A stretch of DNA of 64,000 bases. Origin: Phallusia mammillata (taxonomy: Eukaryota). Position numbers and translations under genes: made by a program. The DNA lies in the NCBI GenBank assembly GCA_965637545.1, contig OZ281501.1:18662001-18726000 (forward strand). Reading direction: 5' to 3'. Within the stretch, counting starts at the first letter, position 1, and the number at the start of each line of letters is the position of its first letter. The notes beneath the pieces are model-generated. The model saw only the letters and a program-made list of their open reading frames with translations. It was not told the DNA's origin and did not search any database. Shown here piece by piece: positions 979 to 3,900 of this stretch.

Positions 979-3900
979 GCTTTTCAACAGCTTTATCATG
1001 CTTACCATTCTCGTCAACTGCTTCTTCATGACTCAAAACACATCCAACATGCCCTGGGTGAACAATTATGTCGAGTAAGTATTACATACAGTGAATGGTA
1101 TCGCCTAAAGTTATTCTGTGTTTATCGAAATGAGAAATTTTAAAAGATTAATAATAATGAATGCGTTGAAGTATTGATTGTGTGTATGTATTTTCGTCAT
1201 TTTGTATTGTTCCATTTTTTTGTATTTGTTCCTTTTTTAGCTTTTTTCTGGCTTAAATTGCTGAAAATTGTGCTGGTTAGAACAAAGGCAAGAAAAAGTG
1301 CAAAATATTGTTAAAAGTCACTCGTGTTTTATCGTTCTGGAAAACTAAACGATTTTTCATGCGAATAGGCTTGATTTTTGCAGACGCATTTTTCTTGGCA
1401 TCTACACGTTCGAGATGATTGTAAAAGTTTTGTCACGTGGTTTTATCTTGACCCACTTCACGTATATGAGAGATCCGTGGAACCTGCTGGATATCAGCGT
1501 CATAGCAACAGCGTAAGCGAACTGTGATGTTGTTTGTAAATAATTAAATATTTCTTGTTACTTTATAACACCAGACACCGACTTAAAGAGTGTGACATAG
1601 AAGTGACGTTAATATTAGTCGTATTTTCAACTTCAGAGAATTCACACAATCTATTTCCATTATCAGTAAAATAACGCAATTGGCTAGCATCTTTTTTTTG
1701 TTAAGTTACGTTTACAAATTTGAAGAAAAATGTTTGAATTTCGCGTGAGAATTTTTGCACATACGCAAATACCTCTATTAAGAAGTAAACATCTGCCGTT
1801 TTAAGATTTTTATCCTTTTTTGCTTCTGCAAACTTTTACAAATACCTCAGTACACTTGGTTTAGCTTTAAAACTGAACTGTATATATTCCTTTTCTTCTT
1901 CTTACTCTATACCTCCTCCTTTTCACATTTACCACAGTTTCTTCTCGGAACTTATTATAATTCTCGGTTTACAAGTGAGCAGTCTTACTGGTCTACGTGC
2001 TTTTCGTGTGCTTCGAACACTCAAAGCTATTTCTTCAAGTCAAGGTATTTCTCTATTTCTATTCTCTTCGTTTTTGTTCTACTTTTCACTATATCTTTTG
2101 CCTCGTGCTTACGCATGCCTATCTCTTTACGACTTCACGCTTTCAACCTCGTTAAATATCTTCAAACATTTATCAACGTGATTTTCGATCTCGAGATAAA
2201 GTGACAAAATTAAGGATTTAAAAACATAAATTGCAAAACTAACAAGTCACAAGCAGCTAATGGGTTAAATGCCGTAAAAAAACTTGAACATATGCCTAAA
2301 ATGGCAAATGTTATTTGAAATGTTAATTAGTAGCGATTTGTTAAAAGAGTTTATATAAGTTAGTTTTATCCCTCTGTCACTCTTGCCACAATAAACTTGG
2401 TTGATATACGTCACACATAAGGTCATGACCTTGGCATTTAGCAATTCGGTTCATGATTCACGTATCATATGAGCAGCAGCAGGTTCATTACATGAGACAC
2501 TTTCATCCACAGTTACTTAGATGTGATCATGAACGCAATGGCTGCTGGTGGTGAAGCGAAGAAAATCCCAGGAATGGCGGCGCTTCGTGCTTTTCGCGTC
2601 CTCAGAGCCTTGAAGGCAATCTCAGCCATTCCCGGTAAATCATATCTGCATGTTTTTCATGTACATTTTGTAAGGTGTAAGCATTGGCATACAGACCAAG
2701 GGCCATGCTGCCCAAAAACTTTCGAAAAATATATAGTTTGTCTGCCGGTCAACTTGCAAAGAGCCGCAAAGGCAAAACGTTTGCATCTAAATTGTTTAAT
2801 TATCTTCCAAAGCTTGGTTCTGTCTTCGCCAGTAGTTGTTTGTATATTAAGGTGGAAATTGTTTCGCCGAGAAACAGACAGGCCAATTTATTTGTAAAAG
2901 ATGACTTTTCGCCACTTCTTACATCATCTTGAGATAAATTGTAAGAACCAAGCAGCAAGTAAAACAAATAAAAAACGCGAGATAACCACACGAATGGCAG
3001 GCGACAAATATATTGGCTGGTCTGATTTTGTCAAAATCTTTAAAAACGTGAATTGTGTACCTAACATAATTCCTATCCAAAAAAACGTCTAACGCGTTAA
3101 AAGTTGTGTATTTAATGAGAAGTATACCATTTATTACAGTAATCTTCAAATTGGAATTATGCTGTATTTTCGGCACAAATGGTGGTAGACGGCCGAGTCC
3201 CATTCTTTTCAAAACAAATTTTCCTCTGCTGGCGTGTCTAGTTGTTAACTGTGCATAATAAATACACACTGGCTTCACCGTCTAGCCTACATAATTAATC
3301 CCCTTCAAAACGCCCGTCGATAAAACGCGATTCAATCGATTCATATACTCTGACGTAACCTCATTCCATATTATGACGTAAGACTGCACGTTTTTGCATC
3401 CGCTTAATGCATATTAATCCCATCATCAGTTTTCAAAGCGCTGTCACATTTCCCATTTTTATGCTCAAAACATGCTTAAAGCATTTGGTCGTCTTGCTAA
3501 GAAGTAGTCAACTATAGCGTAGTAAAACAATAGGATACTACTGCTGCTGCTATATATGTCTTAAAATATTAGATGCCATCGGCTTAATGATTTTCATGTA
3601 CTTTAATGAAATATACTGGGCCTGTCAAAAAAGATGCTTAAAAATTAAGGCAATTCGGACACAAAACTTGACACCTTACTAGTTTTGGGTTTTGAACCGT
3701 TACCCAAGTTTCAAGTTGGCATTAAGAATTTTGTGAGCATTTTTTTTGCTGATTGTTTCAGGTTTAAAAGCGATCGTGTCAGCTCTGATTGAGTCGGTGA
3801 AGGCTCTCAAAGATGTGATGATTCTGACTCTGTTCGGTCTGTCGGTCTTTGCGCTCATCGGATTACAACTCTTCATGGGAAGTCTTCGCAACAAATGCAT

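Follow-up and report, generated by a model that had tools for sequence, protein, structure and literature searches.

A likely mutually exclusive pair of S3-S4 exons in the first voltage sensor of the Nav1 channel of Phallusia mammillata

The 64,000-nt stretch of the Phallusia mammillata genome analysed here (contig OZ281501.1, positions 18,662,001 to 18,726,000, henceforth the window) contains a Nav1 gene, in which two tandem exons, termed A and B below, each encode the outer half of the third segment (S3), the S3-S4 loop and the fourth segment (S4) of the first voltage sensor. We consider it likely that these exons constitute a mutually exclusive coding pair of P. mammillata Nav1. Exon B is the form found in RNA, while exon A, which has counterparts in other ascidians, is probably a rarely used either/or exon comparable to the human neonatal/adult pair. 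Mutually exclusive exons at this position are a textbook feature of the vertebrate channels.

The exon pair and its representation in RNA

The UniRef protein A0A6F9DR20 (P0153, from P. mammillata) is approximately 100% identical to more than 30 window exons located between 971 and 28079, and it coincides with the window sequence across exon B and the constitutive exons on either side of the pair. On the strength of this sequence identity the gene in the window is the P. mammillata Nav1, the orthologue of CiNav1a. In a profile-free search using the last exon as a query, H2ZFQ2 of Ciona savignyi was the nearest representative, and a word search with the domain I region of H2ZFQ2 recovered the tunicate Nav1 set. 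CiNav1a itself has been expressed in oocytes and recorded in its exon-B form (PMC8192821). The exons under consideration are the following:

1384..1512 (+), constitutive upstream exon encoding S2-S3 of domain I, present in the contigs of four runs and matching residues 163-205 of A0A6F9DR20
1938..2044 (+), exon A, the putative alternative exon for S3-S4 of domain I, 107 nt with 35 full codons, delineated by its borders, phase and orthologues
2513..2634 (+), exon B, the default exon for S3-S4 of domain I, 122 nt with 40 full codons, delineated by contigs and annotated Nav1 proteins
3762..3918 (+), constitutive downstream exon encoding the S4-S5 linker and S5; contigs join 2634>3762 and reach 3918

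The initial annotation of the window had described two tandem exons of 107 and 122 nt with matching phase, whose joint inclusion breaks the reading frame, and both the sequence and its translation agree with this description. The upstream exon ends at 1512 with the border AGC/gtaagc, exon A is delimited by cacag/TTTC and CAAG/gtattt, and exon B by cacag/TTAC and CCCG/gtaaat; A and B share AG/GT borders and an identical phase. In translated constructs the inclusion of exon A alone or of exon B alone leaves the frame open into the exon at 3762. When both are included, a stop arises 3 codons into exon B and ends the test construct after 80 residues; when both are skipped, the stop falls 9 codons into the next exon, after 52 residues. 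Each exon length (107 and 122 nt) is 2 mod 3, and hence only the inclusion of a single exon preserves the frame. The two peptides match the S3-S4 region of domain I in solved Nav channels (E value 3e-6 for exon B and 7e-3 for exon A), and they can be aligned to each other over S4. The common stretch of 13 letters, the difference in S3, the length gap of 5 residues and the distinct ends, SSSQ(G) in exon A and SAIP(G) in exon B, are all present in the two exons as had been described.

A run search returned eight small RNA-like contig sets, which belong to two studies and each contain 8-12% of the sampled words, a share approximating the exonic share of the stretch. Four of these sets, two per study, were mapped to the window; they comprise assembled contigs, in which minor forms are dropped. 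Each of the four displays one spliced path, namely 1512>2513 and 2634>3762 (the latter reported as 2633>3761, an equivalent cut displaced by +1), and some of the contigs, given their length of 7.3-7.5 kb, are near full-length mRNAs. Since exon B is joined in all four sets, it is the default or major form of the channel, and it is likewise present in A0A6F9DR20 and in every annotated tunicate Nav1 besides the A-type models of C. savignyi. Thus, of the junctions that had been proposed for inspection, the two involving exon B were seen in the Phallusia contigs and the two involving exon A, 1512>1938 and 2044>3762, were not. Because assembled contigs lose rare variants, the absence of exon A from them is no proof of its non-use, and its use is probably confined to certain cells, stages or conditions, which assemblies of bulk transcripts would miss. 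As a separate observation, unrelated transcript contigs from two runs match 35 nt within the intron between exon B and the downstream exon (3028-3062) and diverge from the window on both sides; this piece is probably a short dispersed repeat.

Conservation and age of exon A

The genomic loci of annotated tunicate Nav1 genes were searched with the exon peptides. An exon A of exactly 107 nt was detected in C. intestinalis (L004:1831-1937, encoding FISEILIAFSVGIDNLTVLRAFRVIRALKTISSHA) and in Clavelina lepadiformis (L002:3162-3268, encoding 35 residues). In both species it has AG/GT borders, lies between the upstream and the B-type exons and is in the same phase as in Phallusia. Furthermore, in seven UniProt/Ensembl isoforms of C. 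savignyi (H2ZFQ0, H2ZFQ3, H2ZFQ4, H2ZFQ5, H2ZFQ7, H2ZFQ8 and H2ZFQ9) the 35-residue sequence YLSEILIAFHVGIDKLTVLRAFRVIRALKTISAHA replaces the B-type sequence. Another model from this species, H2ZFQ6 (P0156), carries a truncated hybrid (...FTALAYCGSAQKIPG...) where a full exon is expected, probably on account of a mis-set splice site. The search for both exons in other tunicate Nav1 genes, which the initial annotation had suggested, was hence successful in C. intestinalis and Clavelina and unsuccessful in Styela and in one pelagic tunicate. Of the two observations that it had named as marks of a decaying pseudo-exon, a lack of reads with exon A and a lack of conservation in relatives, the second does not apply, as there are 107-nt copies in two further genera.

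Between species the A exons show a DNA identity of 56-62%, with proportions of silent differences (pS) of 0.59-0.73, which amount to saturation, and proportions of replacement differences (pN) of 0.31-0.33 over the whole exon and of 0.07-0.10 across the 14 codons of S4. The combination of saturated silent sites with low replacement in S4 points to long-term selection on the encoded protein, and by this measure exon A is a selected coding exon rather than a decaying relic. All four A exons possess Glu4 and Leu16 and have no Ile-Pro ahead of the final Gly, a set of traits found in no B exon. Their length is fixed at 35 residues, with a loop that is uncharged or weakly charged, and the lengths of the B-type exons vary (113, 122, 128 and 131 nt). 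In a tree of the exon peptides the A-type and B-type sequences form separate clades (85/100 and 93/100, respectively), which places the duplication before Phallusia, Ciona and Clavelina diverged from one another. As judged from these comparisons, exon A has been kept as protein-coding sequence since at least their last common ancestor. Within Phallusia, 13 of the 42 bases of S4 differ between A and B, nearly all of them silently (about 2 are protein-altering), and the peptides differ at one residue. A recent gene conversion between A and B in this species was excluded, as almost every shared S4 codon differs silently.

This pattern of substitution bears on two other accounts of the conserved block. 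In the first of these it would be an intronic element or RNA structure controlling the splicing of exon B, its likeness to S4 being a residue of the duplication. The block does sit in the intron preceding the default exon, and conserved intronic splicing elements are known to flank the exon 5 pair of vertebrates (bioRxiv 10.1101/2025.08.16.670673). However, at 56-62% identity the differences are concentrated at third codon positions, which indicates protein coding and not an RNA element, the splice sites and phase are retained, and a scan for RNA duplexes gave no consistent signal; we hence regard such an origin of the conservation as highly improbable. In the second account exon A would be a poison exon, which when included together with B shifts the frame and cuts Nav1 output via mRNA decay. 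Joint inclusion indeed yields an immediate stop, there is a strong acceptor tract along with regulatory-looking flanks, and a decayed product would be rare in assemblies, consistent with the absence of exon A from the contigs. Yet a poison exon requires only its length class and splice signals, whereas here the peptide (the S4 charges, Glu4 and Leu16) is conserved while the silent sites are scrambled, and the length does not stray from 107 nt to other 2-mod-3 values. A role of this kind is therefore quite unlikely.

Several observations weigh against the interpretation of A and B as a mutually exclusive coding pair. The region 1938-2044 is uncovered in all four Phallusia contig sets, which contain no exon A transcript, and none of the isoforms that NCBI lists for C. 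intestinalis, Clavelina and Styela includes it. When the protein collection was searched by words, with an A-type segment from C. savignyi and the domain I segment of Phallusia as queries, no transcript-derived A-type protein was recovered, the yield being B-type tunicate fragments only (P0290 and P0408); the A-type models of C. savignyi may be homology-built rather than cDNA-based. The evolution of the A-type exons is much faster, with terminal branches of 0.67-0.89 as against 0.03-0.10 for the B-type, and they are devoid of a proline that is nearly invariant in other Nav channels. In Styela clava the 327-nt intron before the B exon contains no A-like sequence, and a genomic metagenome contig of a pelagic tunicate (L009) contains no exon A. 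To these may be added that the assignment of regulators discussed further below is based on short motifs only.

A rival explanation related to these points is that exon A is a dead relic, functional at one time and now unspliced and drifting in Phallusia, with its intactness a matter of luck. No Phallusia contig includes it, two of the three frames are left open across it by the CT-rich, stop-poor nature of the region, the end of S4 in Phallusia (SSSQ) looks the most divergent among the A copies, and Styela appears to have lost the exon entirely. On the other hand, Phallusia retains the exact 107 nt, the AG/GT borders and all four S4 charges, and in comparison with Ciona and Clavelina its silent sites are saturated at an S4 replacement of 0.10, which is a misfit with long neutral drift. 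We accordingly view a dead exon as unlikely, although a recent loss of exon A use in Phallusia alone is conceivable.

Returning to exon A as a selected coding exon, a minimum age can be read from its distribution. Stolidobranchia are the sister group of a clade of phlebobranchs, aplousobranchs and thaliaceans (bioRxiv 10.1101/236505), and under this phylogeny the presence of exon A gives the phlebobranch-aplousobranch ancestor as its minimum age. Beyond the Ciona-Phallusia-Clavelina clade two genomes were sampled, and in two more metagenome contigs (L007 and L008) the intron upstream of B is longer than the retrieved flank. In two large ENA contigs (L005 and L006), 10 kb upstream of the last-exon reading frames extend back to residues 1807 and 1461 only. 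An older origin is hinted at by two characters: exon A retains the Glu4 of the vertebrate YVTE and, in three of the four species, the KTIS present in all non-tunicate Nav1 proteins, and both are lost in all B exons, those of Styela and Halocynthia included. These character states suggest that exon A was not derived from a B exon of the crown type and that Styela lost it.

Two further features were encountered in the genomic contigs used for these comparisons. L009 (1857-2767) has no intron between its B-type exon and the downstream exon but retains the one, of about 480 nt, that precedes the B exon. In a tunicate contig from ENA (L005:964-1446) a transposase-like open reading frame, with an RNase-like domain of the FAM200/ZBED5 type, runs antisense to the first matched Nav1 exon, some 2.2 kb upstream of it, and may sit in a Nav1 intron.

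Relation to the vertebrate exon 5 pair

The vertebrate SCN exons 5N/5A (also 5a/5b, or 6a/6b in the numbering of SCN5A) share with the ascidian pair the Nav1 family, the exon and its codon boundaries. The boundaries of the tunicate exons (A/Y ... P/G) are those of vertebrate SCN exon 5, as read from gene models running through 5N and 5A (P0167, P0169, P0171 and P0189). The presence of 5N and 5A in tandem in SCN models from reptile, mammal and fish (P0167, P0169, P0171, P0178 and P0189), in which the short intron between the two is translated, is an annotation error. The alignment over S4 together with the shared codon boundaries substantiates the earlier proposal that A and B are homologous copies, arranged in tandem where vertebrate SCN genes have exon 5. 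In both systems the tandem homologous copies are 2 mod 3 in length and only one is usable at a time, the upstream copy is the less used one and Rbfox-type motifs occur in the flanking introns. Control of the vertebrate pair by Rbfox has been reported (bioRxiv 10.1101/2025.08.16.670673). The two systems are set apart by the extent of divergence: the vertebrate copies are both 92 nt long, about 91% identical and 1-3 residues apart, whereas the ascidian copies, in the three species with both, measure 107 versus 113-128 nt and are unalignable outside S4. Unlike their vertebrate counterparts, the ascidian copies differ in S3, in loop length and in the end of S4, and the use of exon A in RNA is putative.

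An examination of individual characters gives a mixed picture of how the two pairs are related. Both A and B contain LRAF in place of the LRTF seen in every other animal, and this shared LRAF fits a duplication on the tunicate stem or a parallel change. The B exons retain the ancestral IP. In the exon tree, which has only 30 columns, the grouping of A with vertebrates is the best but is weak (61/95); the grouping of A with B has an approximately unbiased (AU) test value of 0.42 and that of B with vertebrates an AU value of 0.12, and none is rejected. A duplication ancestral to chordates has been argued for on the basis of duplications in two amphioxus genes and a 'partial' one in Ciona (bioRxiv 10.1101/2025.08.16.670673), a view that the present comparisons neither strengthen nor weaken. 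We consider it a tentative possibility, on the doubtful side, that the ascidian A/B, the vertebrate 5N/5A and perhaps the amphioxus pairs go back to one early-chordate duplication, which would make the choice more than 500 million years old and A the less changed copy. Were there such a single origin, the ascidians would have kept two very different forms, while the vertebrate copies would have stayed, or repeatedly become, near-identical. Exon A would then have changed less, as reflected in its vertebrate-like Y/F-x-S/T-E start in S3, the KTIS in S4 and the shorter loop, and exon B would be the copy that was remodelled in tunicates specifically and became the default.

Possible control of the choice, channel function and significance

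The sequences flanking the two Phallusia exons contain the following candidate control elements:

1878..1937 (+), pyrimidine-rich tract and 3' splice site before exon A, pyrimidine fraction 0.78
2045..2104 (+), pyrimidine-rich tract after the weak donor of exon A (gtattt), pyrimidine fraction 0.82
2113..2117 (+), GCAUG, an Rbfox-like core 69 nt downstream of exon A, the sole GCATG in the A>B intron
2647..2652 (+), TGCATG starting 13 nt beyond the end of exon B, in the Phallusia sequence

The CU-rich flanks of exon A pointed out by the initial annotation were recovered upon measurement (0.78 upstream and 0.82 downstream), and they recur in C. intestinalis and Clavelina. In Phallusia they rank within the highest 0.2% when all 60-nt windows of the gene are compared. 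The corresponding upstream and downstream values for 60 nt are 0.72/0.70 in C. intestinalis (top ~1%) and 0.63/0.67 in Clavelina (top 4-8%), and the flanks of exon B are average at 0.42-0.58. The TGCATG past exon B, which had likewise been pointed out, is indeed present at 2647-2652, but it is not conserved, there being no TGCATG after exon B in C. intestinalis, Clavelina and Styela. The (U)GCAUG that does recur sits instead downstream of exon A, as GCATG at 69 nt in Phallusia and as TGCATG at 131 nt in C. intestinalis and 146 nt in Clavelina. For all three introns to contain one or more GCATG by chance, the probability is 0.26 x 0.15 x 0.17, or about 0.007, before correction for the choice of intron. 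The context of the motif is alike in Phallusia and C. intestinalis, with GCATGC followed by CTAWTCTCT.

With respect to the splice sites, exon A has the better pyrimidine tract and poor donors (gtattt, gtccaa and gtgttt), while exon B has ordinary acceptors and, in three of the four species, better donors. The A>B intron measures 246-468 nt, a length that rules out steric hindrance as the cause of exclusion. All splice sites are GT-AG, and the exon A donors have no common U12-like consensus when inspected by eye; an incompatibility of U2 and U12 sites was hence judged unlikely. Predicted duplexes between whole introns had energies not consistently beyond those of shuffled sequences (z from -2.9 to +1.9) and were uninformative. 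The strong tract with a weak donor, the CU-rich context and the downstream (U)GCAUG are motifs that together suggest PTB-like repression and Rbfox-like activation of exon A. According to this proposal, exon A would be repressed by default via a PTB-like protein, and an Rbfox-like factor acting between the exons, downstream of A and upstream of B, would activate it. Alternatively, the U-rich sequence after the weak donor could be an enhancer of the TIA type.

The two forms of the sensor retain R1, R2, R3 and K4 of S4 and differ on either side of them. At its end S3 is of the FFSE type in A, similar to the vertebrate YVTE, versus a YLD type in B, and the acidic residue is accordingly displaced, being part of SE in A and, in B, a D that comes one residue sooner. 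The loop of exon A is the shorter one (about 5 residues in Phallusia) and is uncharged in Phallusia and weakly charged in the other species. That of exon B is longer, variable in length and rich in glycine and lysine, with a conserved KIPGMAA. At the junction to the S4-S5 linker the near-universal Ile-Pro-Gly is found in B but not in A. In human channels single-residue changes in this loop alter inactivation (PMC3196094, PMC5811987). It is likely from these differences that the exon swap would alter the voltage dependence or kinetics of sensor I, and a gating effect larger than that of the human single-residue changes appears plausible. A comparable situation is provided by exons k/l of insect para, in domain III, and by the S3-S4 exons of Cav channels, where exon choice swaps or lengthens the S3-S4 'paddle' of one sensor (PMC3805903). 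Like A and B, these show sizeable differences between the forms; unlike them, they affect another domain or gene family, and each is considered to stem from a duplication of its own.

Elsewhere in the window, the last Nav1 exon (26988-28079, about 356 codons) constitutes the G+C maximum at 0.49, and past the IQ region it encodes a long Ser/Thr/Asp-rich tail that is 41-49% alike between tunicates. A 179-residue 'hypothetical protein' labelled as Staphylococcus aureus (MCW0259804.1, P0011) is 65% identical to the C-terminal domain of Nav1, and it is almost certainly a eukaryotic contamination in a bacterial assembly. On the minus strand at 53169-62339, open frames whose translations were read by eye resemble a gene of the phospholipase C type, with segments that look like a C2 domain (53169-53516) and EF-hands (near 58815-59054 and near 61914-62339).

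As regards earlier work, Chernyavskaya et al. list in their Table S1 a 'partial duplication of exon 5' in Cinav1a (LOC100180733, KH 9:4025436-4025528; bioRxiv 10.1101/2025.08.16.670673). It most likely represents the orthologue of exon A from Phallusia, for which the C. intestinalis copy described here is L004:1831-1937, since it belongs to the same gene and sits in an intron next to the annotated homologue of exon 5. The entry in the preprint is a partial, unannotated tblastn match of 93 nt in one species. Exon A as described here is complete, comprising 107 nt with its splice sites and phase, present in Phallusia and Clavelina, under purifying selection by the above comparisons, and absent from Styela. 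Our literature search found no paper on an A-type tunicate channel or its expression. Hence, what was already known is the Ciona partial copy, listed in 2025, and the inclusion of the A-type exon in C. savignyi gene models. The members from Phallusia and Clavelina, the completeness of the exon and the selection on it, its absence from Styela and the conserved flanking signals are new.

The S3-S4 switch in domain I of human SCN1A, SCN2A, SCN8A and related genes affects epilepsy variants and is a target of splice-switching therapy, and there is as yet no agreement on its origin or purpose. In ascidians Nav1a is a single gene. As its two forms differ far more than the human ones, any effect on gating should be easily measured, and as CiNav1a can be expressed in Xenopus oocytes (PMC8192821), swapping the exon is directly feasible. 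The cross-species data provide a corrected annotation with a complete, conserved exon in place of a partial duplication, a minimum age for the pair and candidate control elements that can be mutated in embryos of Ciona or Phallusia. The interest of the pair would rise further should a defined cell type prove to use exon A, or should the pair turn out to be orthologous to the vertebrate 5N/5A.

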